From: Trichosphaerium sp. ATCC 40318
Lineage: Eukaryota > Protista > Tubulinea
Direction of reading: 5' to 3'
DNA length: 64,000 nt
Assembly (NCBI GenBank): GCA_038496445.1
Contig: JALMLS010000536.1
Location: forward strand, 62,001-126,000
Position 1 is the first letter of the stretch. Each line of letters begins with the position of its first letter. Positions 9,719 through 35,902 of this stretch are shown here, piece by piece. The notes beneath the pieces were generated by a model. That model was not told the DNA's origin and did not search any database. It worked only from the letters and a program-made list of their open reading frames with translations. The position numbers and the translations under genes are program-made.

Positions 9719-11536
9719 ATGATGAAAGGAGTTCATTTAGGGCTTTTAGTGCTCCTTTGTACATCGTTGTATGTAACATACGGGAAAAAAGACACAACGA
9801 AGGTACAAAAAATGATTTGTTTGTTTTTTATCATCTAACGTATTGGAAAAACAAGAGTAAACTACCTCCTGGCGAGAAGCGCTTAAATGACATTAAAAAA
9901 ATATCAAAACGCTACACTGTTGTAGATTTTACTTCTAGAACATTCCGTCGTCTTGTAGCTAATGGACCAAGGCCTTATCACACTATTATCTTTTTTTCAA
10001 GCAACAGCAGCCAATTTAAATGCCCGTCATGTCAGTACGTAAACAAACACTAGTAGAAAACAGTATGATCTACTTGTTAAACTGTTCAAAAAACTGTTTC
10101 AAAAACAGACTGTTAAGCGTCTAGACGCGTCGTTGCTTGTTACAATACAATCAACGCGCATATTACGTTATCTTCGTCTCTGACACGTCATTCGCTTTTT
10201 GTTTCTCACCTGTCTTGCAGGCGACTACACCCTGAATTTGTGAAGCTTGCTGATCTGTATAAAAATACAATTTCTGGTGACTGGGATAAAGCAAAAGTGT
10301 TTTTCGGTACGTTTTTTTTCATAATAACAACAAATCGAAGATTGCTTTTTATCACATTCTCAATATCATTAATCACGTGATTTGATATTTTTTTTATATT
10401 GTTCTGAATAATTGTATAGGTATTGTTGAGTTATCTCAGTGCCAAGAAGTATTCCAGTTGCACAGGGTATAAACAACAAAAAACTGAGCTTCAAAAAAAA
10501 AAAAAAAAGACTTAATTTTTATCTACTCTACAGTTGTATCTTACGCGTTTTTCTTGTAGGAACTTATACCAGCTCTTCCACAAATAGTACATATACCACC
10601 AGAGGAAGACAAGGTAGGTATCCTAATCCACCTGACAAGGAAATGTCATTTTTTTTCTTCAAGTTTAAAGACGTCTTTAACAATTGTATTACTCAGGTAC
10701 CTGTATTCTGGACTCAAGGAGATACATATAAAATTGAACCACAAAGCTTATCTGCTGAAACTATTGCACAATGGGTTATGGAGCGTACAAAAGAAAGAGT
10801 AAGCCTCCTTTTGTTTTATCTTCAGCTTTTTTTTTATTAAGTCATTATTTAAAGATCTTTCTTCCTCGTACTACATCCCAAACATACGGTTCTTATGCAA
10901 TGATAATATTTTTTGTCATTATGGTTCTTAGAAGATACGATCTTATTCTGGAATATTATCGTAATCCAATGTTCTGGTATGCTTGTGCACTGGTACGTTA
11001 TTTTGATAATCCTGATTATGGCGTCACAAAGAAAAATAGTGTCAACTCGCAATTTCTCTTCTTGCGCTTTCAAGACTTGACTAAAATCTGTTTAGCTTGT
11101 TTGTATATTTACTAGTGTGGGTACAGTATACAACTGGATACGTACACCACCTCTATTTTGGCGTGATCCACGTTCTGGTGGTGTTATGTTCATCTACCCT
11201 CAAATGCGCTCACAATTCGTTCTAGAGGGTGTCATTGTAACTGTTCTTCGTATCCTTACATTTTTATCAGCTTATATCGCTTGTATATGCATACAAAGCG
11301 ATGAAAACGTTTCACCTTTCTCAGATTTTTCTCATTGACTTTTTTTGTTCTTCCTTGACATGATTTAAGTCGGTATTTGCTCAGGTAGTTTTATAATGCT
11401 CAATGAACGTGTTCCACATGAGATTGGTAATGGAAAGACTGTTACAAGCTATTTAGGATACTTAATGACTGTTTTCGGTTCTGCATTTTGTATTCTTTCT
11501 TTATTCCGCTTTAAATTCAGAGGATACCCTTATTAA
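9719..11536 (+). CDS. Oligosaccharyltransferase subunit OST3/OST6 (MAGT1/TUSC3 family)
   Basis: Signal peptide, GPRPY...FKCPSC thioredoxin-like CxxC, GTVYNWIRTPP, RSQFVLEG, C-terminal FRFKFRGYPY*. Confidence 0.9.
11250..11369 (+). other. U12-type GT-AG intron in OST3/6
   Basis: Donor GTATCCTT; branch TTCCTTGAC (11351-11359) 10 nt before AG; splicing restores the frame (VTVLL-GICSG). Confidence 0.9.
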
Positions 11537-12106
11537 AACACATCAAAGAAAAAAAAATCAGTAAATGTTTCTTCTCATTGAGGGCATAAAAAATAATTAA
11601 AAAAACGTTTTAAACCACGCATACAACATTCACGCCGACTGTTTACGGCTATTGACCTGGGAGCGAGAATAATACTTATTTGGTGATTAATTTTTGGATA
11701 TTACCTTGTTTCAAGATCACAGTTTACAATGCTAGGCCTAGCATACCCATTATCTTGTATCACAGTTTATATTTAGTGAGGGTTCACTTGCAACGGATGG
11801 TCTAGTAAAGTTTGCTTGTAGGTCCTCTAATGCTGCCTATTTCGGTTGATTTGCACTACACATTTTTTCAACATATTTCTTCCTCAAAAAGCGAACTAAC
11901 AACCTGTGAACAATGTAAGAAAATTCTCAAGGCCTTCCCGAGACCCGAGTATGGTAGGGCCAGCAAAAAACAATTCAAACTGCTTGCCAAAAAGGCAAGA
12001 CTGGGAGTGTACATTACAAAACACTGTTAAGCTGTGAAGCTAGGATATGCAAGCGCATACATCATAAAAACTCACAAGGTACCGCAATCAAAGGATTGCA
12101 ACAGGT

Positions 12107-12427
12107 TAGAGGTGGTTGTGGTACGGTCCTGGTTAAGCCGGCTACAAAAATCTGTAGCCTGTTAACCGACGGCTAAGAAATTCAACAAAATCTATAATTG
12201 GCTTTTCATTTAAAATTGTGAGATTTTGTGGTGTTGTACCATGGCACCACATGCTTTTTTAAAATTCTGCATGCTCTCAACGGCTTTGAAAATCGTTTAT
12301 GTTTGATACATAGGTCAAAAGCCTAGTATCAAGCAAAAAAAATGCAAAATGGTTGAGCTCCTCTTCCCTTATTTTTCTTTGCCAGTTTTTCGCCACTCCC
12401 AAAAACTTAAACGGCTCACCGGCTCTA
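12107..12427. mobile_element. Possible decayed hAT-type MITE
   Basis: Ends TAGAGgtGGT / TAGAGccGGT (inverted); flanks AAC-AGGT and AACGAGGT resemble an 8-bp TSD; internal hairpin GGTTAA..GGCTACA..TGTAGCC..TTAACC. Confidence 0.35.
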
Positions 12428-12550
12428 AACGAGGTTTGGCTAGCAAAACTAATAATAAGCAAGAGGAAAACTTGTAATGGAAAGTACACAATGGCTTGGT
12501 GATGAACAATGGCAATAGATTGTATACTTGCCTTTTGTGCTGTTGACTAG

Positions 12551-13941
12551 TTAAAAATCAGGCCAAAAGTATAGAAAGGAGGGAATTTGGCATCCTAGAA
12601 TGTCTATCATTTCCTTTGTTATTTGAGTATCACTAATCTCAATTTGATCAAGGCTTGTTAAATTAACAATACCATCATCTGTGATTTGTGAGCAGCCTTC
12701 GAGATCAAGTTTCTTAACACCAATAAGACTGTTCACTCCTTTGTCAGTTATAAGCTTACACTCACAAAGGCTTATGAATTTAACACCAACCAAGTATTGT
12801 AATCCTTTATCCGTCACAGATGTATTATCAAGCAAAATTGTATGTACTCCAGCAAGTGCCTTTAAAGTACTGTCGTCAACACAATCAAGATATGAAATAT
12901 TTATGACTTTTACACCTGCCAATTGTTTTATCCCATCATTTGTTAAAGATTTGCACATACCCAAGTCAATATGGTGTACACCTGCCAAACATGATAGGGT
13001 ATCATCTTTTAGTTGTGTACAACCGCCAAGCTCTATACGTGGTATACCTGCCAAAAGTTTCAACACATCATTTGATATTTGAGTGCAGCCATCAAGATTA
13101 ATTTTTTTAATCTTCTTTGTTGTTTGATTTTGTGTCAATAAATACTTTACTCCTTCATCAGTAATATTCTTGCAGTCACTGAAAGATATGAAACTTGCAT
13201 TTGTTAGTGCTTTTACACTGTTATCAGTAATATTGCATCTGTCAAGCTGTATCTTGTGTACACTACCTGAAATGGCAATAACACCTTTGTCAGTAATTCT
13301 GGCGCAACTGGATACATCAATAGTGTGGACTCCAGAGAGTGCCGAAAGTCCTTTATCTGTTATTTTTGTCCGCATAACATCAATTGTGTGAATACCACCA
13401 AGTTGTTGAAGCCATTCATCTTCTGCATACCCACTTGATATCCTTAGTGTATGAATACCATGAAGTGATTTAAAACTGCAACTACTTTCTTTTGTATGTA
13501 GTTTCAGAGAATGTACACCTGAGATATGTTCTAACATAGCTTCTGTTAACGAAATATTATCCCTTATATGGAGGTGACGGATACCAGAGATGGTTTTAAA
13601 GTCATCATCACTCATTGTAAAATTGCCACGAATAACTATTTTCGTATTTTTTAAAAGAGGACTTCCGTTTAGTTTGAGTAGATTTTCTCTTGACTTGACA
13701 GTCACCTTTAAATACCCCAAATGCTCTAGAATGATCGTAGAAAACAGTTTACAAACAAATGTGGCAGATATACGGCATTTCTTACCCAACAACGCCAGGA
13801 TACAAAATATTATTTCTGTTGGCAGATAAACCAATTCTAATGGCCTATGCATATTGTCAGCACAATAAACAGGGTTTATGTTTAATTGAGCCATAAACGG
13901 CCTAATTAATGTGTGAGAACATACTCTGAAGAACCAAGCAT
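12551..13941 (-). CDS. F-box + leucine-rich repeat protein (paralogue 1)
   Basis: LPTEIIFCILALL...TFVCKLF F-box; about 14 LxGVHTIDLSxCxxITDxG repeats; short first exon MLGSSE, then one phase-2 intron and one ~1.3 kb exon. Confidence 0.9.
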
Positions 13942-14847
13942 CGTTTAATCTTGCAAAAGTTGTTCAAGCAATGGCAGAATAATTTGGAAAGCACATTTAA
14001 AAAATTACTGCCTTAATTAAACATGAATAGCCCTTAGTGCCGGTATTTCCTTCGCCCCATAACTTGTAACATGCAACAATTAAAGGATTTACAAAGCAAC
14101 ATGCGCTATCTTATCCGTAGCTTGTCTACGTCTCATATCAGCGATTTCCCCTTCGGCATGCTCCTAGTATTGTAGTCAATAACAGTTGTATTTGCAGCAA
14201 TCTTTCTCTAATGTCTTGGTTGGAAGCCCTCAGTGAGCATTGAATATATCTTGTGCTTGAGCACGTGAATCAATTTTAAATGTTTTGAATGGTGGCTAAT
14301 AAAAGAGAGTTAAGCAAGTGTCCAAGCAAACACAAAACAACAGAAAGCATACCGCTTTGTGATTTGGGTAGGACCAGAGTAATCTGGATGACACAATATT
14401 GGACAAGACTGGAATGGACTTTACCACACAGATAGAATAGAATAGGATAGAGGCGTAAGCAACGGCTAGGCAATTACGCAATGACTATGATGTACTAGAA
14501 AAGTTGTTTGTAGTTTTCTTGTTTGACTGTGAATAAAACAACGATCTTAGGCTTCGTGACCAAGCAGTCAAGCCAAGAGATAGGCTCTCCTCCAATACGT
14601 GTTGTTGTTGTTTTTAAGGAGTCAATGGACGATAGGGACCTAATATAGACTAAAAAACACATCATCTTCAACAACGAATTACTACGAGCTGTCTTATTTG
14701 TAAACTATTGACTGTAATACTACAATAAATGTTTAATTGTTGCGCTGATAGTTGAGCACATGTATAAATTGACAACCAAAACAAGACTTAACATGAGTTG
14801 TGACTGTGATCCACAGTGGATTGCGACACTCAAAACAGCTTACTGAA

Positions 14848-15451
14848 ATGGCCGACACACCTGCTCAATACAAAGCATCTTGTTTTTGCAAGGCTGTACA
14901 ATTTACTACGATTGGAAAGCCCATATTATCTTGTTATTGCCACTGCACATTATGCCAACGCATCACGTGCTCACCCTGTGCATTAGTTGTAAGACACCTT
15001 TAGCTTTGTTCCAAGTTTTATTGAACTTTAGGCTATTTACGCTGACAAACAGTTTACTATCACTAAAGGCGCTGATAATATAGCCTATTTTGATAGCTCA
15101 AAAAGATTACAGAGAGGACATTGTAAGACATGCGGAACGCCATGTGCTAATAAAATAAAGGCGGGAGGTATGTGTTTTGATTTAGAAGTAACCTTAACAC
15201 AACTAGACGGTAATTTCATGTATTCTGCCCAACTGCCTCTGTTTGATGGTTATGTTGACGGTAAACTAGCAAATGTACTGAAACCAAAGGTTCATATCTG
15301 TTATGACAATCGTGTTGTTGATATCAAGGACGGTTTGCTAAAGTTGAAGGTACAACTTTTTTTTTTGATTTTTTGAAAGTTGGCGTTTAACTATGAGACA
15401 CAGGATATGCCAAAAGAATTTGGTGGTTCTGGAGATATATTTGAACATTAG
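14848..15451 (+). CDS. GFA/CENP-V family zinc-binding protein
   Basis: ASCFCKAVQF, CYCHCTLCQR, HCKTCGTP, PKVHICY; three introns. Confidence 0.9.
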
Positions 15452-15569
15452 CGAGGAATGGGAATAAAAAGTAATTTTTTCCGGAAAAAACGAAGAAAAC
15501 GATGCATCTTTTTTTTTCAGATACATTTTTGTTTCTTTTCGGTTTTATCGCCGTAAACGTTGTGTGACT

Positions 15570-18500
15570 TTATGGTAAGTACAAAGCGAAATCATAGTTG
15601 CCTGAGCCAATACTGAATACCACGTGACCATTTTGAAGAACAGCTGAATTCACTCCAAGAACACCTATTATCGTATTAGTGAGAAGCTATATTTACAATC
15701 AACAAACCTGGAACGAACTGTTTGTCTTTCCATACAATAACACCACCTTCACGAATAACGTCATAACTCTCAATCAATGGTACCCAAACTCTCCCTGTAC
15801 TGCTAAGTGGTACTGTTACGCTGTGTTTGTAAATAGGCATTGTACAACCAGTCGCCTACAGCAAAGTTAGTGCCACAGCAAAAAGTACTAGATTCCGTAC
15901 TTGGACTACAAGTTTCGTTTTCATACCAAGTTCAGTCCATTGCAACAAATCTGATTTGCAAGTACTTGGTTTTATGGATAAATCCACATATACAGGAACA
16001 GTACACTTTGCCTTTCCTGTACAAGCAGATGAAACGATTGATGTTATATTCTAATTAAAATAAAGTCAGAAAAAAAGAAGAAAATACTGTTTTCTCTGTT
16101 CGATTGTTCTTACAATTCCTGTGCATCCACCGTGTTGATAGTTACCACAATAACCAAACGGAAATCCATAATCAGCAAATTGAATATCGCTAATGTAGCC
16201 CTTAAAAGTCTTATCAGTATAAATAGAAACGTTGAATCAGAAAACTCTTTCTGAGCTCGTACTCCGTTTTCACAAGCAAGCTCTAAATTGTCTCCAAAAT
16301 AAGCTTCTGCGCATATTGGTATAGATTCTGATGCACTAAAAATTTGCCAATTTGATGCGACTTCTCCCTTGTATGTCCTAATACTTGACGAAACACTAAA
16401 AAATACACTTATTCAAAAGGTATTCAAAAAAGTTGTTTTAATGAATTCAAAAAAACCTTGTCAGTCTGTGTTTTACTTCAGTAACACGTGGATAAAACTC
16501 TATTTCATCAAAACCTATTGATCCTTCTGCCTAAATCCTCATAAGTCGGAAATATTCTCTGAGTTTTTTTGAAAGGAAATAACACTCAAAAAAGTGTTTG
16601 ACTTTGTGTTGTACCAAGTTAATGCCAGCCAAAGCTTTATAGCACCAATCTGTAAAAGAACATAGAGCTTGATGATTTCTACTCAATACATTATCTTTAT
16701 AAGCATACCAGCTCTCCCATATCGTTGTTGCACCACTCTAAAAAACAAAGAACTTTCAGCGAAAAAAAACACTGTGTACAAATATCTTTCTTACTTTTAT
16801 CATATACGCAAATGAAGGATACGTATCTTGAAGAAGCGCATCTAAAGCTACTTTTGTGTAACCCAAGTTGGTCAACTCCAGGAACATCCATTTGGTGCCT
16901 GAAATAAAGGACATGTTTCAGTTATTTCTTTTGAAGTGTGCCACTGAGTACCGTGAATGCCTGTTTGTATATGACCGGATTGATCATCTGTAATTGTACT
17001 CACAGTACGCTGTATAAGATCATCTTTAGATTCTTGAGGCACAAGGTCTTTATACAACGCAATGATTTGCTCTGTTTCCCACCTTACAAAAAATGTCGGT
17101 TAATAGGTTTTTTTTGAAAAGCTTTCCGACGTACCCATGGCCATAAGTCATTGTAGTTTTATTAAAAAAAGTTTCCCATGAGCTTCGAACACGGCTTGCT
17201 TGTTTCTTTTTTAAATGTTATTGGTGTTATAATGTACACAATGTACCTTAAGGAAAGAAGCATCTTTTTGTTTGTCAAGTTTTTCAGCAAATTCAGCAAC
17301 AATCTCCAATTCTGACAACATGTAGAACTTGTATGTATCTTAGATAAGGAGATAGTACTCTATTTAGATTTCTTACAGAAGATAGAACACTTGATGCACA
17401 ACATCCTTTCTCTAATCCAAGCCAGTCACCATAGAACGAATCCATAAGTAATCCTGTTTTGTTATCAGATTGAGAAATAAGAGACTCAACATACTAGATA
17501 GAAAACATTATGTCATGAAGATGCACAAGATAAATGATATCCTACGCACTTTATACACGCCATCATACATCTCGTTAACTATTTCCAAGTCGCCAGTGTA
17601 TAAATACAGATAGTATAGATTGAATGTATATCCAGCTCCCCAAGCTGGATCAGCAGGTGTTCTTCCAAGGCCATCTGCATTAGGAATAACCTCTGGTACT
17701 GAACCATTATTTGTACTATTGTAAAACACTTGATTATCTCTTATATCATGCACCCATTTTGTTAGGGCTACAAAGGCATCAGAGAACAAAAAAACTGATG
17801 CAAAGAAGGGGAAAAAATGTCTGTACCAGCGCCCATGCTGAACTCCTTCATATTCGCTTCTAGAGGCAAAAAAGAGTCGGCCATCCACCCTCTACGTTCT
17901 CTCTGTAAATTGTAAGTGGATCAGAGGCAGGTTTGGTGGTTTTACTTGTGGACAATCAGTTGGAACATTCAACCAATTACTCAGTCTTGCATAAACTGAT
18001 GCAGATTGTAAATCGTTCAATATTGGTTCAGAAAACACGATATTTCCTGTTTGTTTTAAATCTGTATGTAAAAAATACGCTGTAAGTGTAGACCTTGTCG
18101 GTACACCACTATAACCAACTAAAGCGACATATCTAACAGGAATAAAATAAGAATATGTTCACAAAAACAAAACCAGAAAAGTGCAGCTACCTGAAACCAA
18201 ATGACGAAAATTTTGGTTTGTATACTTCTAACCCGCTTCCTTTACATATATATTTTGTAACCTCTAGAACATTGTTCCGTTCAGAATCAAACTGAAGCGT
18301 TAAGTCATTGTTAGTTGATAAAAACTCTGAATGAAATAACTCAATCTGTCTTCCACGGGAACCTTTTGCAAAGTCATAAGTATTAGATGTGATTTGAAGA
18401 TCTTACATTGTATCTTGATACTACAATAACCGGCAATTGTTTGGCCAAAGTCAAATATGAACACCGAGGCATTGCTAGGAGACTGCCAAACTTTCAATGC

Positions 18501-20051
18501 TGAAAAAGTTTGTGTTTCTCGAATTGGAGGCATCATCCTTAGAACTGTTACTAACATACTGCTACGATCTCACCTACAAAGCTCGCATGTCTCCTCTTTT
18601 GCTTAATGGTGTAGAAGAAGCGGAGGCATATGTCCAAGCACTATCATTAAAGCCAACATCATCCCAACCCTGCAAAAAAAAATTCAGGAAATCACAAATC
18701 ATTGCTTTTTTTGTAGTACAGTTTGTTCTAATCGAGCATCATAGTGTTCGCCTGCATACACATCGTTCATTATTATCGGGCCCTAGAGAACCAAATTAAG
18801 GAATAAATAGAGAATATCAAGCTAAGAGAGAAGCAGATACACAAATCAAAGTAGCTGTGAGCGATGAACATCTTTGAGCTCACCTTGGATACTTTCCACT
18901 TTGTAGATGTCGGCACGCGTATCGTTTCACCAGATTTGTATTTGATGGACAAAAATGCAGATACTCTGTTAGATGCTTCAAGAAGCTCTGAGAACAAAGG
19001 TTCATTGTACCTAAGCGAAGTTCATACAATATACTACTTATTTAAAGATTATACCATCCATTGCCTAACTCAACGCCAATCACGTTTTCACCGTCTTTAA
19101 TTGCATCTGTAACATCATATACATCATATAAAATTGTTTCACGAAACGTTGTAAAATGACCCAGGACATGATCACCCACTTTAAGTCCATTCATCCTTGC
19201 TTCATACCTACAATTAAAAACACTTAAAATTTGCTAGCTCTGTATAATGTACCATCCCAGACCCACTATGTAAAGGCGTGCAACACTGACACTTGTTTTT
19301 TTAACCATGAAAGCTACAACAAATAAGAGAATCGAAGGCCGAAGAAAGTTATAGCAAGATATTGAGTGACGTACTGCTACGAAAGAGGTCACCACCAGTT
19401 ATCCATGATGCACCACTATCCTCCCATTCATATCTACCTTTAATAGCCATATCGAATCTAGCGACTTTACTCCATGGTGATACAGTATCGCCATCCCACC
19501 AGCGAACTTTCCTATTTTTGTATAAACTTGTGAACTTTAGTTTAGAGACGAGTACCAGAAGTATGATTGGTCTGAGAGCAAATCCTCCGCTTCTTTCGGG
19601 TATTTGATATTGTTAGATTGGGAAGATACAACCTCGGGAATATGTTAAGACAATTATGGACGTTTTGAAAAACAAAAAAAAGAAATACTGTCTTTTGTAA
19701 TCACGTGATGGTTGGATACCTTTTTTGAATCCCATGTATCACCTAGCAGAACGCCTGAATCCGTCGATACTTGTATTTGATACGCATATTGCGATTGGTT
19801 TCGTTCTAATCAATTTATCCGTAATACACTGCATTACACACGCTACCTGATGGTGTGGAGTACCAAGAAAAGCGAGGATTAAACCTATCAACGCCAATTA
19901 CAGGACTTTCCATGTATTCAACCAGTAACTGCTGTGGAGGGTACAATACTCTACTGCAATGCGCTAGAAAACAGTTTTAGATAAAAATAAGGTAGATTCG
20001 CCCACCATAAACCAAAAGCAGGATCAAGAACAAGACAAAAGCGTTTGACAT
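15570..20051 (-). CDS. Secreted GH78 alpha-L-rhamnosidase with an inserted SUEL/Gal-lectin-like domain
   Basis: Signal peptide, PRFSW, DFGQTIAG, VPTDCPQRERRGWMAD, DPAWGAG, TGIHGT, TYPSF, GSGNYDF. Confidence 0.9.
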
Positions 20052-20296
20052 GGTCCTAGTAACGTGTGATTCAAAAACCGTTCATAAAATCATGTGATTA
20101 GTCATTCTTAATTCAACTGAGGTGGACTTAAGAGCTGCACTAACTATAACCAAAACAGTACTACTGGTCCAACCAGCCAGAACTTAGCGATGACAATCGA
20201 GATAAAACGCTTCCCGTTCGATTTTGCGGAAATCCTTGACTAATCCTTGACTGAGATAAGCTTTTTTTATTGAAAGTAAATCTGTTTGATAACAAG

Positions 20297-20916
20297 ATGT
20301 CTGAAACTGAGGGAGGAGAATCGAAGAAATATGGCTGGAAGGAAATTGGATTGTTTATCGGATGTGGCGTATTAATAGTACAGTTTGGAATTAATTATAA
20401 CATGAAAGCTTATTTTCCTAGCTTTTGGGTATTATAAACTTCATATTCGGTACAGGCATTCCTTTTGTCGGGTATATTGTTGGTATGTCTTCAAAAGCGT
20501 CCATATCACTAACAAACGCTGGAAAGGTGCATGTCAAGTTATTGTTGGCATCTTTGGAATTGTCGGAGTTTTTTTTAAGAGCAAAAAGCTCGTTTGGTTC
20601 GTATCCGCACTACTACGCATTTTTTAGCGTCAATTACGTGTTTTTGGCGTAAAGCAGCTTTTTTTTTGTTAGAATTCCTTAACGTGCTTCGTTAATGCTT
20701 GGTGTCGCGATTTTGTGTATACTCACTGTCATACAACTAATTATTTGGTTGTTTACTTCAAACAAGAAGGTGATCAACTTGGTTTTAACGCTCATCGCGT
20801 TTGTGTTCTACGTGCGTACAAACTAAGTGAAAATACGCCACAACAAACTAACTGTTCATCAGGGAGGCATGTTTCTACTTTCATGGCTATTCCGCGACCG
20901 CAAATTGTTTTACTAA
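20297..20916 (+). CDS. Small four-transmembrane protein of unknown function
   Basis: MSETEGGESKKYGWKEIGLFIGCGVLI..., four hydrophobic helices when the 20601 intron is spliced at a U12-type acceptor. Confidence 0.7.
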
Positions 20917-21257
20917 AGCAATTATAATGTAACAAAGCACGTTAGTGCTTAGGTAAGTGATGCATAAGTATTGGACATACTATTGTCCATTTCACTTTAC
21001 ACATACATAAACAAGTATTACATAAAGAGTTGTTATTATCACAATGGATTCATGCCAGCTGGCGGTTGTAGTAATGAGCATTTCTTAACAACAATTCGCC
21101 TCAACATCAGGCAGCAACGCTTTTCTGGTGTAGCTACTGTTGTACGAATTCATTCTCTGTTGTAGTTGTGTCGGAAGAAAAACTTGCAAAGTTTTTGTAG
21201 TCTCAGTTTTTAGTTTAAGGACGCTCTTTGCCTCAATTAGATTAACAGCGAAGAGTC

Positions 21258-23964: not shown

Positions 23965-24060
23965 CTTGAATAAGTCAAAACTCTACTTAAATAAATGCCT
24001 GTCATTTACCTTTACCACTTTATTTTGATGACATTATGTACAACTGGCCGATGAGACAAC

Positions 24061-24137
24061 CACTAAGACTGCTCACTCCTTTGTCAGTTGTAAGCTTACA
24101 GCCATAAAAACTCATGACTTTAAAACCAACCAAGTGT
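24061..24137 (-). pseudogene. Orphan single LRR module homologous to the F-box/LRR genes
   Basis: Close match to 12721-12795 (taagactg.tcactcctttgtcagtt.taagcttaca); translates HLVGFKVMSFYGCKLTTDKGVSSLSG. Confidence 0.75.
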
Positions 24138-24220
24138 AATACAACGTCGACGTGTTTTGAGGCCTCAAGACTAATGTTGAAAAAATGACTTTTTGTAAAA
24201 CTAAGCGGTGTAGAGTTCGA

Positions 24221-27200
24221 ATGGCAAACGCTCCAATAAGAAGTGATTCTATAAACAAATTACTGTGGTACCATTCTAAAGGAGCCCTTACACATCTAAT
24301 CACGTTTTCTAACTCCCAAATACAAGGCTAGCAGCTGAATCAGATGACTTGATAAAGGTTAACCAATTATTGAGCGGTTCAACAGAAGAACCAAGCGAAA
24401 GGCTGTACAGCACCTTTTTTTGAAAGTTGTTTTTTCTAACACGTGTTAAAGGCTTGGAAAGCTCTTGGCTCTTGTTTGTAGCCATGGTAGATTAAAAGTC
24501 TTGAAATATCTTCTATCTTTTAGTAACATTAACGTCGACGTACTCATTGGCGAGTATAGCACGTGCGTAAATGGAAAACAAAGTAGTTCGTTTTATTCTC
24601 TGAAAGACGTATTGCAGGCCTCCTCTTTATATTGCTTGTGCCAAGTACGTATACTCAATGATCTATGTAAATACTTAGTGTGTAAACTAGTCATCATGAA
24701 TCTGTTGCCAGTGCGCTTATAGAAAAAGGTTGTAATGTAAATTTGGGTGACTGTCGTGGCAAGTCTTAGACCGTAGATTAACGTTACTGTTTGCTTACTC
24801 TTTCCCTCAGGCATTACACCCTTGAGGTAAGAATCGTGCAAATAACTAAAATGTAAGAATTAAGATGACCAGGATAGCATGTGAGAGAGGATTAGACAAA
24901 ATAACCCGAATGCTATTAGAGGCTGGTGCTGATCCAAAGTACAAAATATAACAATCGATTCATGCTCACCTTTTTGTTGTATTCCTCTCACCAATGACAG
25001 CTTGAGTTACTCGCCACTTATGCTTGCATGTTCGTAATATTTATACACTCTATTTTATTTCATTGATGTCTAAATAGCCCTCTATGGACATAAAGAATGT
25101 ATCAAAGTACCACTTGTTTATTTACATGTTACAAGCTTATAGCTGTTAGTTGCTTCTAGAATCGGGAGCCAAAGTGGAGACAGCTCGTCCACTTGATGGT
25201 AGTTACTTTAGCATATGACACCATTAATTAAATCATAGGATACACCGCTATTCTTTATGCTTGTACTACTGGAAATGCAGACGTTGTTCGAACACTATTT
25301 AAAGCACATAAACGAGAAGATACAAAAAGTATTGTTGTGTCGCCTTCTAAAGAAAGGCACGTGTAAAAGTTCATGTAAACATGGTAAAAACTAACGCCAT
25401 TTTAGGCACACGTGCTTGATAGTAGCAGCACGGTTCGGTCATGCAAATCTAATATCATTGTTACTTTCAAGGCACAGCATTGGCGTGAATTGGCAAGCAT
25501 ATAAAGGAGAAACAGCATTGTACTTTGCAACACAAAACGGTACATCACTAATCCTTCATTGCACAAAAAGGTTGATTGATTATGCTGTACAGGTCACCTT
25601 GATGTAGTACTACGTCTTCTACGTGTTACTTCTATACAAGTAGATTTACATTGTGGAAGTGATGCAGAAACAGCTCTGTGCTGTGCCGTCAAAGGTGAGT
25701 GTGCATGTTTTAAACCCGGGAATAATAGATTAACCTTGTCTTTGCGTCTAGAGGGACACGTTGATATTGTAAAGGCGCTCCTTGCCTCAGGTTCATCTAT
25801 GTACGCCGTAGATGGATATGGCCACACGATATTGTATTATGCTGCACGAAAGGGCAATCACAGATTAGTGCAACTTTTCATTACTCTTCTGAAGGATGAT
25901 AACACAACAACATTCCAAAAGAAATTTCCTGATATAGAGATTAGTGGGCTAATGTCAAAAGTAGCTCAACAATATAACACGTTTGATTACAAGAGAGGTA
26001 ATATGAAAGTATAACGCTTACTAATATTGGCTTATTTACAGGTCTTGTTTCTCGGGCACCTTGGATGTTCTCTGATAAAATGCTATTCCTTAAAGGATGG
26101 AATCTTGTTGCAGCTTCAAAGGTGAGATGAAGGCACCCTCTTATAGGAGCTTTGGAGGATGATCTTGTAAGGACAGTGTTGATTTTGATATAGGAGGTAT
26201 TGTCTGTTGACTATAGAACGTTTAATTTATTTCATCCTGATATGATGAATGTACCTGCAGTCATGTATGAAAGAAACCAGCTTTTAAGCATGCTTGATAA
26301 ACTCGGAGGCTTAAAAACATCCATCAAACAATGGAAGGTAAATATCGATAACACTAACATCATCTAATTGAGTTTTATTCAAGGTAACTAGTGCAATAGC
26401 AATTGACAACCCAGGTACAGTTCCTAGTGCTAGAGCACAAGCTGTTCGAAAAACGAACCAATAGTAAATTCTAACAAATTAGGAAGTAGCCTGAAACCAC
26501 GTGGTTACAAGTTGCCCTTTTTATTTTTGAAGGTTCTTAGTTAACTGCTGTTTTAGGGCTTCGATTGAGATTTGAGAATTGTATGGAAGCTATTGCTGAT
26601 AGACATAGGTTTGGTTTTTTTGGTGACTTGTATGCCCTAATTTTTTTTCGAAGGAGTCTTCCTGATTACTTTTGTGCAAAGTGGAATGAAGATGAAAAAA
26701 AAAGTCTTGTAATGAAAAAGTTTCAACAAAAAATAGATGCTGTTACTTGGAACGCAACAAAGATGGTACAATATTCTTGCTATCACCAAAATTTGCTAAT
26801 AGTCTTTTTAGTTGCCTGGTAAGGTACAACCAAGTCCAAGACTTGATGCTGTTGATAATAATTCGATATGTAGTACCTTCCTTCAGTTGAAGTTATGCCT
26901 GTGGTACATGGTACAAACAGTGATTCGGTAAAACCCCTTTGCCATACTGGTTTTGGCATAGCTAGGCGAGAAGGTGGAGATGGCGGTTGGTATGGACAAG
27001 GAATCTAGTACGCACTTTTTGACTAACAATGCAGGTTGTTTTTTCAAATACTCACATGTCCTAGCTTTACTTCTTATCTTCATTATGCCTTGAAATATGC
27101 ACCTGGAAATACAAAGGTACTAGTTGTTTTTGAACCAGTAAATAGAAACTAGTGAAATGAGACCAGTTTACTTTTTTTTGTTGTAGACAATTGTTGTTGG

Positions 27201-27599
27201 CTACGCCATTCCAGGCAACACATTCCCAGGTAACCTTAAACATGTGCCACATCAGTTGATTTGAATTAACATATTAATAAGTTACTGAGTCACACAGAGA
27301 TGAAGAATTAAGCTTACTTGGGAAACCAATAAAACCTGGTTATCAAAGGTAAAAATCAAAATCGGTAAAAAAATTGTTTGTCTTAAAAATATTTAGTCAT
27401 TATGTTGCTGTCAAGAAGAGTGGCGCATTACCAAGAAGATACAAAAGTGATATGGAAAGGGGATTGTTTGATGAACTGGTAATACCTCAAGGTGCTCACA
27501 TACAAGAACAATGTGAGCTTTTTACATTTTGTTATAGATGCTCAAGCCATTCCAAAATACGTTGTAGTACTTGACGAGGTCGATTCAAATCAAGATTAA
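24221..27599 (+). CDS. Ankyrin-repeat protein with C-terminal PARP-like (ARTD) ADP-ribosyltransferase domain
   Basis: Several ankyrin repeats, then VVHGTN...TGFG...DGGWYGQGIYFTSYLHYALKY...FDELVIPQDAQAIPKY (H-Y-E triad). Confidence 0.85.
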
Positions 27600-27884
27600 A
27601 AACCGGAAGTGCTACCTCTAAGAACGAGATAATGGTAAACACTCACAGTTGTGACAAACAAAACGGAATACGTGTGTAGTCACTACTAAACCATCTCACC
27701 CAAATACTTCTTAATAAATACTAACACGTGCACTGTTGAAAGACTGTTAACAGCGCTTCAGTAATAGACAGTTTGTGTAATTGAACAAGGCAACAGACAT
27801 ACATCAAATTTCACCAAGGGGAATCGATTGCAAGTGAACAAATTAGATTTATTGAGTTCCAATAACAGAAAAATGTTTTTAGCA

Positions 27885-29261
27885 TCATTTCGATAATTGG
27901 GCTTCATATCTTTCCAAGGCAGCTAAACACCCTTTTTGTTTAGCTATTTCTTCATCTGTTAGGACTTTTTCAGAAAAATAGAAAGCTAAAGGGGAATGCA
28001 CTTTAATATCAAGTGTGCGCAAAGCCAACTCATTCATAATTTTGGATCTTTCTTCATCATTTCCTGGATCACCTTTTCCGCCAATCACATTGATGTCAAC
28101 TACCAATTGTTTTGCCAAAGCCAAGATATGAGGGTCCTTTTTGCATCCTGGCATTATGGTCTTCGTAACGAGGCTTTCCTACCAAGAAATTTAAAAAAAA
28201 ACGAAACGTCAATCAACCTTTAAGGTTTTGCTTCAGAAAAAATCTGACGTTTCTCGTACAAGGGTAACCAAGCCATAATCAAAAGTATGCCCAATAAGTG
28301 TCTTCTTGACAACTGCTACAAGCAAAAAGAAGCTTGTAGTATAGCGCACTTTCCTTCCCCATAAATAATCACCAGTGTACTCAAGGGTATCAAGTTTACC
28401 TTCTTTCCAAGTCGAGGAAAACGTGACGCCATTATACAAAGTTGTAGAAGTGACACGTGGAGTTTTCTGCGCGTCATCACATAATATCGCTGCACACACT
28501 TCATGACCCTTCGCTACAGCCACTTCATGCGGCGTTTGCTTGTCTGTAACGTCACGAATGCTTTTATCCGCACCGTGCGCTAATAACAGCTGTGCGAGTT
28601 TTGGATGGTCGTAAAACGCACAACGGTGTAAAGGAGTGTATCCCATGTGTGTTTTACAGTTGGGATCTGCGCCTTTTTCCAATAAAACTTTAGCGACAGC
28701 AAAACAACCTCTCCAACAAGCTTGATCGAGTGCTGTTTCACCAACAGAAGTTTTAAGTTCGGTACGGTGTCCATTGTCCAAAAAATGCTTTACAACATCA
28801 GCGCGGTTCATTTGAGCTGCCAGATGCATCATCGTTAACGTATCGCCAATATCAATCTCTGGCTTGCCTACAACGCTGATAGCTTGTTTTATGTCGTCAA
28901 TGGAGCAACGCATAGATACAATGCTGTGTACGTTACTAACACCTTCAAAAAGCTTGTCCAAGTCGTCGGTTGACATGTGGTTACTGTTGTGTAGATTTTC
29001 TAATTCTAAGTAATGTTGTTCAAAATCAGGAACAGTTTTTCTCAGAATTTTATTTCGTGGATTAGTTCCTGAACCTAGTCCAAAATAGTTGTTGTGCTGG
29101 AAAAAAACAGCTGACGTATTCGCATTCAGAGTGCGTTGAACCTCACAACAGTTGTAAATTGACATCCTTGTAGTCACTGACTGAGATAGTCTTTCTAAAT
29201 TGGAAAAGTCAACATTTTTATTGTATAGCTCTTTGTCGACAATTGCCACCAACCAAGCCAT
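27885..29261 (-). CDS. Ankyrin-repeat protein with unknown N- and C-terminal regions
   Basis: GETALDQAC, GADPN, GYTPLHRCA, KQTPHEVA; one intron at ~28181-28350. Confidence 0.8.
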
Positions 29262-29413
29262 TTTCAATAAACAATACATTGTCTACCTATGGGGAATGAT
29301 AAACAAACGCAATAAACAAGTGCTATATATTTTATTTCTCTGTCCTATCAAGTACAATACTTATTGCAGTAGCGCAACCACACCCTCGGCATTTTGTCCT
29401 ACCAACAAACAAC

Positions 29414-29527
29414 TTAAAAACAAGGCCATGACATACAATTTGCTACAGTTGTGTTGCATCCTAGGTAATCAATCATTTTGTTTGTTATTTGAGTGCCGTG
29501 ACAGTATATCAAGGCTTGTTAAATTAG
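29414..29527 (-). pseudogene. Decayed 3' end of an F-box/LRR paralogue
   Basis: ttaaaaacaaggcca...gcatcctag...tttgttatttgagt...atcaaggcttgttaaatt matches 12551-12666, including the WPxF-stop. Confidence 0.7.
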
Positions 29528-30589
29528 AAACTAGTCCCTTGTCCATTCACCAAAAATACCCCTTAGCTAGACAACTTTGTCACACAGAGTACTTTCTTAA
29601 CCAACAACAAAGTACACTTAATCTGTTGGAATTTTAAGGCCTAAATATTGATTAGAACAGTTTAAAGAGGGAGAACACAATTGAGACTTTTTTAAGCTTT
29701 CACATTTTAGCTCACTCATTTGTTATATTAAGTCAATATTTTTCACAACATGTGTATCATTTTTACTATATGTGCAGGGTCATTAAACCAGACTGTGGGT
29801 TCTTTTTAATTCTTCTCTATTTCCATTTATGCAACAAATTCTTTTCCACCAATATGAGTAAGGCTTACAAGGAACCTCCCTTTAAAATCATCATCACATC
29901 CTTCATTGTACTAAATGCACATAGTTTTGAATAATCATTCTAACCTGTGCACCTTTAGCAAATACAAGATGCTGTGTAAATCATTGTTTACTCCTTACCT
30001 GTTTTTAAAATAACAATGTTATACCAAGAAGTTGACACAATACTTAATGTGTTCAAAAACTCAAGTTTTTTAAATCATCAGATTTTTTTCAACACCACTA
30101 TAGGAGTTTAGACAAACCTTAGTTTTTCGGAGAACTCACATTCACCTTAAAAGAAACTGTTCACTACACTCCATCAACTATTGCTATAAATTGCATTGGT
30201 AATACAACACATTTCTTATCCCTATGAAAATGTGGGATGGTCTAGTTTTAAATCCAAAATCGCTTAATGGTCCACTTGTGAATTGGAATTTACACAATGC
30301 TCGAAACGTAAAACTAATCTCAATACATGGAAAATAGCGTTATGACACTGTGAAAATCTTCTCAAAGCTTGTTATTGTTAATTTTATGCTTTTTCTTTTA
30401 CAACCACAAACTACGTTTTTAGCGTACAATAAATTCGTTTAAAGGTATTGACTTGTGGTTAATCCTTGCTTTTGTATTGTTTATCACCGTTTTACCTAAA
30501 ATCCCAATGAAGCTCAGTTGACGCATATTACAAGTTTAAAAAAAAAACGCAAAAATAAAGTAAATAATTTATTCCACATTTATAAACTT

Positions 30590-30865
30590 AACAATTGCCA
30601 CCAACCAAGGGATTTTCAGTACAAACATTGATATGAGGCCTGTGAACTGCTTACAAAAATGTCCCTTAACCTTGTGCTATCAAGTTCTACTTGTTGAAGT
30701 CATATTTTGCTGATAATGTGTAAATGTACTCTTGCTATATCTGTTTAGGTGCTAGCAATTAAAAACAAGGCCAAACTTACAATATGCTAATTTTTTCATA
30801 GTAATCTGAATTTGTGTTAGATGCATTAGGGCAGTACACTAATATCAAGGCTTGGTTAACTTACA
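30590..30865. repeat. Degenerate duplicate of 29240-29530 (ankyrin gene 5' end plus LRR 3' remnant)
   Basis: Shared, co-linear blocks acaattgccaccaaccaag, tatcaagt, ttaaaaacaaggcca, atatcaaggctt. Confidence 0.7.
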
Positions 30866-31333
30866 GTCGAGTTCTCGCTGTGCTTGCCTAGAACCCATTC
30901 TCAGTGATCCATTGGTGGGTATAGGCATTCCTTTTTGTAGAAATTATTTCTCGAATTTCTAAAAATTCGGAAAATTACGTCCGATTAGCAGCTAGCACTT
31001 AACTCTGCAACGTCAACCCTTTTGAAGGCGTTAAATATTGCATACAAGAAACAGGCTTTTGTGAATTCCTATTCTGAACACAAACTCTGATAGACTTTCT
31101 TTAAGCTTCTCACATACCCAAAGACAAGTTTAGCAAGTGGCTGCAAGCAGTGGTGTTAGTATTCAAGGCAAACTATTTCAACCAAAACAACAAAAACTCC
31201 TCAAGACAGCAAACATTTGCAAAGTTGGTATGTTGTTTTCTAGCGGAATTTTCAGATTACACTATGTCCCCGTTTATTTTTTTCAATTAATACTAGATGA
31301 ATTAAGCCATGCGGTTCTTTTAATACATTCATT

Positions 31334-34162
31334 CTAAGCAGATAATTCCATACTTATGCGAACCAAATGATCATATGTCACAGCAATATGACCTAAAAGC
31401 GGCTTTAGCTAATAGCGAAAAAAAAAAAAAAAAAAAAAAAAGAAGCCTCACCGTCTTTGTGAGGATCACTCCAATCGAATAGTTCCTTCACGTGTACCAA
31501 ATGACAGCATAGTTTTAATAAATCATTCTTAGATCCTGCTGCGCCAATAGCAAAGTGAGCCAGCTGGGAAGAAACCGTAAGTCCAAATGCAGCAAGTTTA
31601 GAAAAAAAGAAGCTAATCCTTACACTGTTTTCTATTGTTTTGAGACTAACGTTAATGTTCGCATGAGCCAATGTAGTTTTGATTTCTTCAGCACTGAATG
31701 CACGTGGTTCAGAACCAACATAAAGTTTTGATTGAAGCGTATCAACAAGATGATGGAAGGCAGCATATTCTACGAGATAAAACATATGAGATTAAAAGAA
31801 AAATGACGCCGATAGATATTTTGGCGTAAAGTCACTGTTTATGCACCTTCGAAGCTAATTGTTCCATTTCTGTCTTCATCAAATACAGATATAATTTTAT
31901 TGGCCATCTCAACACCAAGAGGTTGATCCCCATCGAAAAATACTGCCTTGGAAAGTCTAAAAAAAAATAAATGTTCTAGATTCAAATACTCTGTTTTGAG
32001 TTTGCTGCTTACTCTGTAACTGATATTTCACCATTTTTGTTATCATCCATTGCATCAAAACTTCCTTTTAACCCAGACAACTCCAAACTTTTGACTTGTT
32101 GAAGCATAGTCTTATGCCAATCACGACCTAATTTTTCTCATTATTTTCTTATTTAAACTTTTGTCTTTTGATTTTGCTCCACAATTCAGGAACCACAATT
32201 ACCATCTATTTGGTTATATTGAACCTTTTTCCTCACAGCTTGACTTCTGGCTTTTTCAGGTGCACCTGGTTTTTCAACAGGTTTACCTTGAGACGCTAAA
32301 AGGGTGTCAAAATAAAATGTATAAATTTGTTTGGTATCAGCCGTGTTACCTGCTCTTCTTAGTTTACTTTTTAATCCCAATGACTTGAATCTATTAATGG
32401 CAACAGCGATCTTAACACCAGCTTTAAACTTCCTTCTTGCATTATATTTCCTAAATTGCTCTCGAGATACTTCAGGAATCTCTGTATCTTTTATAGTAGC
32501 ACTAGCCTACAAAGGAAAAAAACAAATAAGCAAAACTTATCTACACCAATATTCAATTCGTACTATCCATGGATGAGCCAAAGCTTGATCAACAGTGAAA
32601 CGTTCATTAGGATTCTTTCTTACCATCTTCCATACTAAAGCCGATAAGAATCAATCCAACAACTAAAGAAAAAAAAATGTACCCAAATCTTTTGCATCAT
32701 TCGATATGCCATACCTTCCATTACATAAGGAACATTCATGTTATAATGTTTATCTCTATAGATAGTAATTTCACGTACCACGCATCACCAAGCCAATTCC
32801 ACGTGCCAACCTCGATATTTCTCATCATTTGTTCTTGGTCAGGTATTTGGAATGGATGTATACCGCTCAGTAAAATGTACACGATCAAACCTAATGCTCT
32901 TTGTTAACATTGCAGGTTTCTCTATAACACTCACCAATTGCCCATACATCTACACCGATACCATATCCTTGAACTGGAGACATTTGCTGCCAACGGCGTG
33001 CAACTAAAAACCTGTTATCCAATTGAGCTTTAATTATCGGTTTTACCAATTTCTGGAGCCATCTAGGTGATTGTAAGACATAAATATAAGGATATAAATT
33101 TACGTACATATGGAATTGTACCAAGCATAGTCCTGAATGCAAATGGGTTAGATCCACCACGAGCGGCAAACCCGAAATCTGAGTTTGACATTAGATATTT
33201 AAAAACCAAACATCACAAAGCTCTGTCTTGAACTTAAACCTTGCAGTACCTGCAATTTTTACAATAGCGTCATCACCACCTGAAGACAATAACAGATATG
33301 GGAAATGTTAAGCCAAATAACAGCAATAAAATCAACGTTTGTTAGGTGTAAAAATAAAATAGAATAAAGATACTCTCCGGTTTTATATCACGATGCGCAA
33401 TACCTACCACAGTCTCTTTAACAAACAAAGTAACAGTATGAAAACAATAACAGTCGTACCCTGATCGTGCATGTGTTTTAATCCAAGAAGGACTTGTTTA
33501 GTTACAGAGCTAGCATAAGCTTCACCAAATCTCTTCAGCTTGGCAATACGATCAAACAACTCTCCACCTGTACACACGTGAGAAAAAAAAAACAAATAAA
33601 TAGTAAAGGGTCTGTGAATAAATTATCGGGTCATAGCTTACCCGTTACGTATTCTAAGGTGACGTAATACTGGAAGTCGCCTTGTGGAGCGAAAACTTCA
33701 CCCAAGTTTACAATCTAGTTCAAAGGCGTTAGATAGCGTTTATACAACGTGCAAATGTGAATTTGATCCGTTTTCGTACGTTTTGGTGTTGTAGATCAGC
33801 CATAACCTTCAACTCGCTTAGCATCTGGTCTGGTGGCGTTTTACGTTTATCCAGGATCTTCACAGCGCACGCCTGAACATTAAAAGGGTTTGTAAACTAA
33901 AAGTGTTAAGAACAACTCTCATACTTTGCCTGTTTGCTTATGAATAGCCTTACTACGCGAAATTTAGTGTTTGCTATAAACAACACACGTACTGAACAAC
34001 AGAAAACGCTCCAGATCCTAATTTCTCCTTAAAATCGTATATAGATTGGATTGGGGCATCATTTTGTCTTGGGAACCGCCATGACATTGCTGGTATTTGT
34101 GGTTGTGCCTGCTGAGTAGATGACCATTGTTGAGCAGGAGGAGCGTTACTAGGGAACTCCAT
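31334..34162 (-). CDS. CaMK-group Ser/Thr kinase fused to a C-terminal penta-EF-hand-like domain
   Basis: LGSGAFSVV, AVK, GGELFDRI, HRDIKPENLLL, DFG, APE, DVWAIG; EF hands DDNKNGEISVTE, DEDRNGTISFEE, DPHKDGHIAVTYD. Confidence 0.85.
33298..33373 (-). other. U12-type intron with GT-AT termini in the kinase catalytic loop
   Basis: Donor GTATCTTT; branch GGCTTAAC followed by ATTTCCCAT; only this junction restores HRDIKPE-N-LLL. Confidence 0.85.
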
Positions 34163-34418
34163 TTGTGGGTATTTCGGTTAACTGCCACAGTGATTTATTA
34201 CGGTCTTGAACAGGTCACAAATGCGACTTAATCATGGCCGTTGACACCTTTCATATCTAACATGAAAGTATACGCCGTAGCTTGTTTTATTGAACAGAGA
34301 GATGAGCGAGAAATGTATGTAACAATTTTTATTTTGTTATTTGCTTTATAAAAGCAAAACATAGGAAGCAACACAGAAATTTAAACAAGAACTCGCCAGA
34401 CACAGGCGTTAAAAACAT

Positions 34419-35902
34419 TTACTTGGTTCTCCTCTTTTTCTTTTTTTGTCCTTTGACGTTATCTTTCCAGTATGCAGCCTCTTCCTCATCTACAAAATTC
34501 ATTAATGCGTCATTTAAAGACAAAAAAGATGTACAAATAAATAGACAAAACGGTAATTAAAAAGCAATTGTCGTGATCTGTAGTACCTTTGACAAGTTCA
34601 AGAGTGATATCATGACCTTCAATCTGTGGGGTTTGTCCTTCTAGAGCAGAAATGCAAATAGCAGCACGTAGGTCTTTCTTGAAACGGACAAACGTAAACT
34701 CTTCGCTTTTGTTAGTATCAACGAAAGCAACTTGACCATGATCTATTCATTCGAAACGTTAGCACCTCCAACAAATAAAATAGTCAAAAAAAATAAAAAG
34801 TACGTACCAACAAAGAACGCTTTGATCATATCACGAGTTACCTCTGCAGGTAATTTTGGAAATTTAAGGATAGTTCCAGGAGGGTATTCAGTAAGTGCTT
34901 CTTGTCGTTTTCTCTTCTTGATACGGGTCTCCTCTTTCTTCCATTCAAGGTATTCCTTTCTAAAAAAAGCCACATTAGATACATGAAAAGAAACAACAAA
35001 ATAGTCACAACGCACTTCATTCTGACCAATAGAGGATGTTTATCCAAGTAATTAAACGCGCCTAGTGCTACAACTTTCTCAGCTGCTTCTTTGCTCTCAT
35101 ACTCTATATAAGCTGATCCCTTCAAAAGATCCTTTTTCCTAAACACACGGCGAATACGAACCTAGGAAGAGAAAAGTTACAAAAAAAGAAAAAAATGCAG
35201 TTGTGTTTTTTATCAAATGTAAAATTAAAAACGCTCGATAGAGGTTTACTCTGTTACGTACGGACAATACTGTGCCGAATTGAGAAAAGTATTTTTGTAG
35301 GGCTTCGAGATTAGTCTCTTCTGCATTCTTTGGGAGCCCTTTCTACGGTAGGTGAGTATTGATCATGTTTCACGTTTTAGCAGCAGACGTACGACATAAA
35401 TACTTCTTGGTGTTACTACATCATCTTGTGGAAGTGGGTGCCTACGCTTCATCTTGGTCTTATCTTCAGAAACCTAAGCCTGTTTTGGTATTCGCTCAGA
35501 GAAGGTTTGGTTTTACCTCAACGACTTCTGAGTCTACCATAATTGATGCGATTTGCTCCACGTCTACGGTTACTTTCTATTTTGACGTTAGAGAGTGAAG
35601 TTTATGCGCTGTATACCTTAATTCTGTTAAAAGTGGTCAATAGCGACACTGGGATCCCTTTGTGTAGTCAAGGAAAAAGAAAAATAGAGTAAAAAGCAAC
35701 TTCAAGTTAAAAAGATACAACCACCATTGTCATGCGCTGCTTTACGCAAGAAAGTATCCTTGGTGTAGTTACTGTCGCTGAAATAGAAATCTATCTGCTT
35801 TTTCAAAGCAGCCTTTTGTTCCTCAGTGATTGGGTTTGTGTCTTTTGGTTCCTCCTCTTTAGCCTCAACCTTTGTGTCTACCTTCGTGTCCGTTTCAGCC
35901 AT
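34419..35902 (-). CDS. SSB: La autoantigen (La motif + RRM1 + RRM2)
   Basis: QIDFYFSDSNYTKDTFL, GWIPVSLLTTFNRI, RSIYVKG, KGSAYIEY, EEAAYW. Confidence 0.88.
35658..35718 (-). other. U12-type GT-AG intron in the La motif
   Basis: Donor GTATCTTT; branch TTCCTTGAC 9 nt before the AG end; restores DNGG-W-IPV. Confidence 0.9.

Follow-up and report, generated by a model that had tools for sequence, protein, structure and literature searches.

A stretch of 64,000 nucleotides (nt) from the marine tubulinid amoeba Trichosphaerium sp. ATCC 40318 (contig JALMLS010000536.1, positions 62,001 to 126,000; G000:C180:62001-126000 in the assembly that we searched; hereafter the window) raises the question of whether the introns in it that look like substrates of the minor (U12-dependent) spliceosome are genuinely so, and whether their local density means that such introns have expanded in this lineage. 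An earlier note on this DNA had described four introns in which a GTATC(C/T) donor is paired with a CTTRAC branch site, together with a weaker fifth, and had read them as unusually dense and possibly expanded. We find that minor introns are real in a lineage without reported ones and that their density is ordinary. We consider it likely that the five introns, which lie in five different but neighboring genes, are genuine spliceosomal introns, that four of them (I1 to I4) are removed by the minor spliceosome and the fifth (I5) probably so, and that several hundred such introns exist genome-wide, the five forming a local cluster and not the sign of an expansion. The assembly searched comprises 70.28 Mb in 642 contigs at about 37% G+C; the published genome (Tekle et al. 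2023, PMC10521059) is given as 70.87 Mb with 37.69% GC, 27,369 gene models and an N50 of 262,981 bp.

Motifs and ends of the five introns

The donor and branch motifs of all five introns lie at the coordinates stated earlier, and we regard the first four as convincing U12-type introns. I1 (11250-11369, plus strand; 120 nt, phase 1) is a GT-AG intron with the donor GTATCCTT and the branch site TTCCTTGAC, its branch adenosine lying 11 nt from the AG. I2 (20601-20691, plus strand; 91 nt, phase 0) combines the donor GTATCCGC with the branch site TTCCTTAAC and ends in CG. On the minus strand, I3 (33373-33298; 76 nt, phase 1) has the donor GTATCTTT and the branch site GGCTTAAC, with the branch adenosine 10 nt from the end of a GT-AT intron, and I4 (35718-35658; 61 nt, phase 1) joins the same donor to the branch site seen in I1, with the branch adenosine 10 nt from the AG of a GT-AG intron. 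The weaker fifth, I5 (19719-19633, minus strand; 87 nt, phase 0), is a GT-AG intron with the donor GTATCCAA (GTATCCAAC) and the branch site GTCTTAAC, the branch adenosine being 12 nt from the AG. The earlier description of these introns as very short also stands, at 61-120 nt in the window.

The donor consensus /RTATCCTT (the slash marks the exon junction, here and below) is matched in full by I1 and in variant form by I2 to I5, and the donor variants of the five recur with strong branch sites genome-wide. The branch consensus TTCCTTRAC is exact in I1, I2 and I4 and partial in I3 and I5, and the distance from the branch adenosine to the last intron base is 9-12 nt in all five. Among a strict set of 69 U12 candidates from other parts of the genome, 57 have an AG 7-14 nt past the branch adenosine, with a peak at 8-12 nt. 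A point absent from the earlier note is that the terminal AG is missing in two of the five introns, I3 ending in AT and I2 in CG or close by; in the strict set, at most 12 of the 69 (17%) lack an AG at 7-14 nt, a figure that includes some false positives. We rejected a mobile-element origin of the five as unlikely because they share no sequence beyond the motifs.

Host genes and splice junctions

Flanking reading frames were checked on both sides of each intron, and protein searches were made by reference, exon by exon. Removal of each of the five introns restores the reading frame, and protein conservation backs I1, I3, I4 and I5. I1 lies in an OST3/OST6 (TUSC3/MAGT1-like) gene, where the upstream and downstream exons match Pfam OST3_OST6 at positions 191-239 and 241-294, contiguous with one split codon between them. 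TUSC3 and MAGT1, the human relatives of this gene, count among the listed minor-intron genes, and I1 may therefore be ancestral, on a likeness at the level of the gene only. I3 interrupts a CaMK/CDPK-like kinase gene with Pkinase and EF-hand pieces in neighboring exons. Here the AT end alone gives HRDIKPE-N-LLL, the invariant catalytic loop of kinases; the nearest AG (33281), 17 nt further on, would delete N-LLL including the invariant asparagine. A 106-amino-acid lineage-specific exon of the kinase gene, searched against public proteins, returned no self-protein. I4 lies in the gene for the La protein: its upstream exon matches Pfam La positions 1-26, splicing yields ...DNGG-W-IPVSLLTTFNRIK, the La motif, whose conserved tryptophan is encoded by the split codon, and La-type RRM_1 and RRM_3 domains follow downstream.

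The host of I5 is a GH78 alpha-L-rhamnosidase gene. A stop is met on reading through I5, and the spliced product, WDSKK/VVSSQS...YFW, is typical of the Rha78A N-terminal domain, so the weaker fifth feature is a real intron. Its signals are the weakest of the five, although elsewhere in the genome the donor variant that it carries, GTATCCA, stands with strong branch sites; we think it somewhat likelier than an even chance that I5 is U12-type. The gene spans about 15570-19976 (minus strand) and contains Ig_Rha78A_N, Bac_rhamnosid_N and Bac_rhamnosid6H pieces with many short introns between them. In the genome paper (PMC10521059), two Trichosphaerium GH78 rhamnosidase genes appear among putative acquisitions by lateral transfer, with bacteria or giant viruses as sources; the host of I5 may be one of the two. 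If I5 is U12-type and its host was acquired from bacteria or a virus, at least some minor introns would have been gained recently.

I2, whose 3' end is not AG, is probably U12-type. Our model of its host is a small membrane-protein gene (20297-20826, 116 amino acids) with exons at 20297-20377, 20422-20482, 20527-20600 and 20692-20826, in which two 44-nt major (U2-type) introns lie upstream and hydrophobic helices run on across the I2 junction. Neither AG nor AC occurs for more than 80 nt past the branch site, and U12-type excision must therefore end non-canonically. Our best guess for the end is the CG at 20691, with 20688, 20694 and 20697 as further in-frame options, and the locus would also accommodate an in-frame GT-AG alternative ending at 20766. 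A 146-nt U2-type intron (20527-20672) was set aside, as two 44-nt U2-type introns plus the U12-type intron keep the membrane-protein frame. Exon searches found no homologues of this gene, and a word search with the exon-2 frame gave no match. Short exons likewise gave no matches to solved structures.

Genome-wide frequency of minor introns

Donor-branch pairs were counted on both strands of the whole assembly at spacers of 20-140 nt, with the same pattern on the same strand at spacers of 161-281 nt as background; this long-spacer control was used instead of a reversed-pattern control, which was discarded as it underestimated background about 1.5-2-fold. By the earlier note's own definition (GTATCY..CTTRAC) there are 4263 pairs at the short spacer and 3956 at the long one, an excess of 307±91. 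Three further patterns gave the following counts: (i) GTATCCT..CTTRAC, 682 against 458 (excess 224±34); (ii) GTATCY..TCCTTRAC, 460 against 252 (excess 208±27); and (iii) ATATCY..TCCTTRAC, 359 against 304 (excess 55±26). The exact branch octamer captures about 60% of the CTTRAC-bearing class, as it does in the window (three of five), and GTATCCT accounts for about two thirds of the GTATCY class. Once AT-AC types, branch variants and longer introns are added, the U12 total comes to roughly 400-800, a bracket and not a census.

As denominator we took 27,369 genes at 7.7-8.7 introns each, giving about 183,000-238,000 introns, and the U12 share is then roughly 0.2-0.4% of introns genome-wide. (In Table 1 of PMC10521059 the introns per gene stand at 8.7 and the exons at 7.7, a mutually incompatible pair; the values are probably swapped.) The reading of these introns as unusually dense and possibly expanded is not borne out: the class so defined amounts to about 307±91 introns, and the share lies under the 0.5% below which the earlier note would have put the density down to chance local clustering. 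Its figures for the window itself hold up well. A self-trained gene finder, which is crude and mispredicts long introns, placed about 195 introns there, and 192 per 64 kb are predicted from the published density (PMC10521059, where introns and exons are also given mean sizes of 75 bp and 154 bp); a rough manual total of 150-180 was thus reasonable, and a local U12 share put at 2-3% comes out at about 2.6% of some 190 window introns.

Minor-spliceosome components

That the lineage keeps a minor spliceosome, as had been proposed, is supported by what the genome encodes. A U11 small nuclear RNA (snRNA) scores 66 bits and a U6atac, single-copy at G000:C20:307774-307894, scores 52 bits, both above their Rfam thresholds; the AAAAGGG of the former is complementary to the observed motifs. 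A U12-like RNA is full length and scores 39 bits against an Rfam cut-off of 53. It has the intact branch-binding box UGAGUAAGGAAAAUAA, with a UAAGGAA that is likewise complementary to the observed motifs, together with an Sm site and a 5' end that could base-pair with U6atac. A homologue match for PDCD7 (U11/U12-59K) is also present, and zf-U11-48K was not found in the genome. Separately, the window itself holds a U5 spliceosomal RNA gene at 40960-41067 (plus strand; 60.8 bits against an Rfam threshold of 40).

Building on established knowledge of U12 splicing, we propose that the U11/U12 di-small nuclear ribonucleoprotein would recognize a rigid (G)TATCY donor and the TTCCTTRAC branch site together, and that the 3' cut would be placed by its distance from the branch adenosine, at 7-14 nt, and not by a strict AG. 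A cut set by distance would explain why two of the five introns end in AT and CG.

Alternative explanations

One alternative is that the five belong to the ordinary U2 type and that the likeness of their donors and branch sites to the U12 consensus is fortuitous. Major introns in the window, as predicted by the gene finder, are mostly 40-60 nt long, with the donor AG/GTACGT and a CTAAC or TTAAC branch site 8-15 nt from the AG, so that CTTAAC is possible in them; a clear U2-type intron at 18783-18883 carries TTCCTTAAT near its 3' end, and the motifs of I5 are both weak. However, none of the 195 predicted introns has an RTATCY donor and CTTRAC is suitably placed in only two of the 135 short ones, and about 0.06 joint chance look-alikes are therefore expected per window. 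I2 and I3 moreover lack the AG that U2-type splicing requires, and the strict pair GTATCCT..TCCTTRAC occurs 157 times genome-wide against 13 in the reversed control, which itself understates background. We consider such a resemblance by chance very unlikely. Still less do we favor a Physarum-like expansion to at least 2% of introns across the genome, with the window as a typical sample, which we judge very unlikely. The local share of about 2.6% speaks for it, as does the presence of one intron in a GH78 gene, a family listed among putative lateral transfers (PMC10521059), which would imply gain. But a share of 2% needs about 4,000 U12 introns and, at a capture of three in five, about 2,400 GTATCY..TCCTTRAC matches, where 460 were seen and about 208 are real. 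Furthermore, both the branch motif and the U12 snRNA keep the canonical form and show no change of the Physarum kind; of the two marks of a Physarum-like state, a share of several per cent and an altered branch motif matched by a compensatory change in U12, we found neither.

A local cluster within an ordinary total thus remains our preferred reading, and the question becomes how odd that cluster is. An even spread of 307-800 U12 introns would put 0.28-0.73 in each 64-kb window, and five within 24.5 kb is a local cluster in the extreme tail; when only introns of the exact-branch class are counted, of which the window has three, the expectation is about one such window. It is possible, if on balance rather doubtful, that minor introns are over-dispersed, being concentrated in old intron-rich genes that lie together, with the total unchanged. 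The low probability of five or more per window (between 1e-5 and 1e-3 according to the total that is assumed) argues for this, as do three strict pairs lying 0.7-3 kb apart among the first 100 matches listed, where about 0.75 would be expected, and the report that ORFans (genes of no recognized family) and bacterial- or viral-looking genes together make up about half of the gene models (PMC10521059), such genes being unlikely hosts of ancient U12 introns. On the other hand, the host genes of the five introns are unrelated to one another, the introns have no sequence in common, and the window was chosen post hoc from a scan of the whole genome. The close strict pairs among the matches listed are at G000:C11:689139-692183, C34:288908-291034 and C69:132551-133281, a spacing that points to two minor introns within some genes.

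Several points weigh against our preferred reading and should be set out together. The genome-wide total hinges on the share of U12 introns with other branch variants, which we have only bracketed. The probabilities just given, from a plain Poisson model, translate into 0.01 to 1 window with five or more such introns among 1,098, which makes this window rarer than chance by itself would readily produce. Junction ends are placed solely by reading frames and conservation. As for the minor snRNAs, which the earlier note had named as a check, the search succeeded in part: U11 and U6atac were recovered above threshold, the U12 candidate falls short of its Rfam cut-off, and U4atac was not found, either with Rfam at either threshold or with two patterns complementary to the U6atac stems. 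Finally, U6atac is altered in its box for pairing with donor positions +6 and +7, reading GCCGAGAGA where the family consensus has AAGGAGAGA (over a longer stretch, GAGCCGAGAGAUGG against GAAAGGAGAGAAGG). The altered residues are, we take it from published pairing schemes, those that pair with these two positions. U12-type donors here are relaxed at +7, and the altered U6atac may go with relaxed donors. A wider version of this idea, that minor splicing as a whole has become relaxed in this lineage, with the U6atac residues pairing at +6 and +7 lost, donors relaxed beyond GTATC(C), at least 10% of ends being neither AG nor AC and set by distance, and the introns over-dispersed, strikes us as unlikely.

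Major introns, a decoy and U1 snRNA

Some major donors in the window are GC, of the form GCACGT. A sixth minor-intron candidate at 18892 was rejected, as the GTATCC there belongs to an exon (V-S-K) and the GTGAGC at 18883 is the true donor. The U2-type intron that begins there (18783-18883, minus strand) thereby mimics a U12 intron as a decoy: its U12-like TTCCTTAAT stands 13 nt before the AG and the exonic GTATCC 9 nt upstream of the donor.

Eight of the ten U1 snRNA genes begin ..UUACGUACCUG (..UAACGUACCUU in one copy), with G where the near-universal U1 sequence has a uridine at position 5 (U5). These loci are at G000:C122:19165-19328 (L099) and on C144 (L100, L101/L109), C100 (L102), C13 (three copies, L105-L107) and C22 (L104); the canonical ACUUACCU is kept in two copies, at C289:12258-12417 (L103) and C39:222248-222412 (L108). 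The variant U1 pairs perfectly with the dominant major donor AG/GUACGU, position +4 being C in 60% of predicted short introns. It looks as though U1 and the 5' splice-site consensus have evolved together, and there may be two classes of U1.

Comparison with other systems and implications

The minor introns of Trichosphaerium resemble those of animals and plants in their RTATCCTT-like donor, their TTCCTTRAC branch site near the 3' end, the predominance of GT-AG, a phase bias away from 0 (three of the five here are in phase 1), their hosts, which are old housekeeping genes, and a share of about 0.2-0.4%, as in humans. They differ in being much shorter (61-120 nt), in their branch-to-3' distance of 7-14 nt and in a donor relaxed at +7 to +9; non-AG ends also look commoner here (two of five; at most 17% of 69) than the approximately 4% of animals and plants. 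With Physarum polycephalum, also an amoebozoan, they share short length and non-canonical ends that include GT-AT, a combination that makes up 17% of the non-canonical U12 introns of that species (Larue et al., bioRxiv 10.1101/2020.10.12.336362). Physarum, however, has many thousands of U12 introns, a TTTGA branch motif and a U12 snRNA that has changed with it (GCAAAGAA), whereas in Trichosphaerium the U12 introns number a few hundred, the branch motif is the canonical TTCCTTRAC and the U12 box, GUAAGGAA, is canonical as well.

Other amoebozoans surveyed likewise retain the minor spliceosome with a modest intron share, the counts of U12 introns being 265 in Protostelium aurantium, 90 in Pelomyxa schiedti and about 12 in Acanthamoeba (Larue & Roy 2023, PMC10639083). 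A complement of about 400-800 would be the largest in the amoebozoans after Physarum, because the genome is very intron-rich and not because the share is high. We found no report of U12 introns in Trichosphaerium, which is absent from the 2023 survey (PMC10639083); the supplementary files of PMC10521059 that were searched do not mention them.

These findings extend the distribution of minor splicing to a tubulinid amoeba. They also caution against extrapolating from a share of 2-3% in one 64-kb window; counting motifs genome-wide, with a control on the same strand, is a cheap way to settle the matter. The two non-AG ends offer useful cases on which to test the choice of 3' site by the minor spliceosome. 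Lastly, with Trichosphaerium as a second intron-rich amoebozoan, one that has several hundred minor introns and a canonical branch code, Physarum looks more like a one-off.

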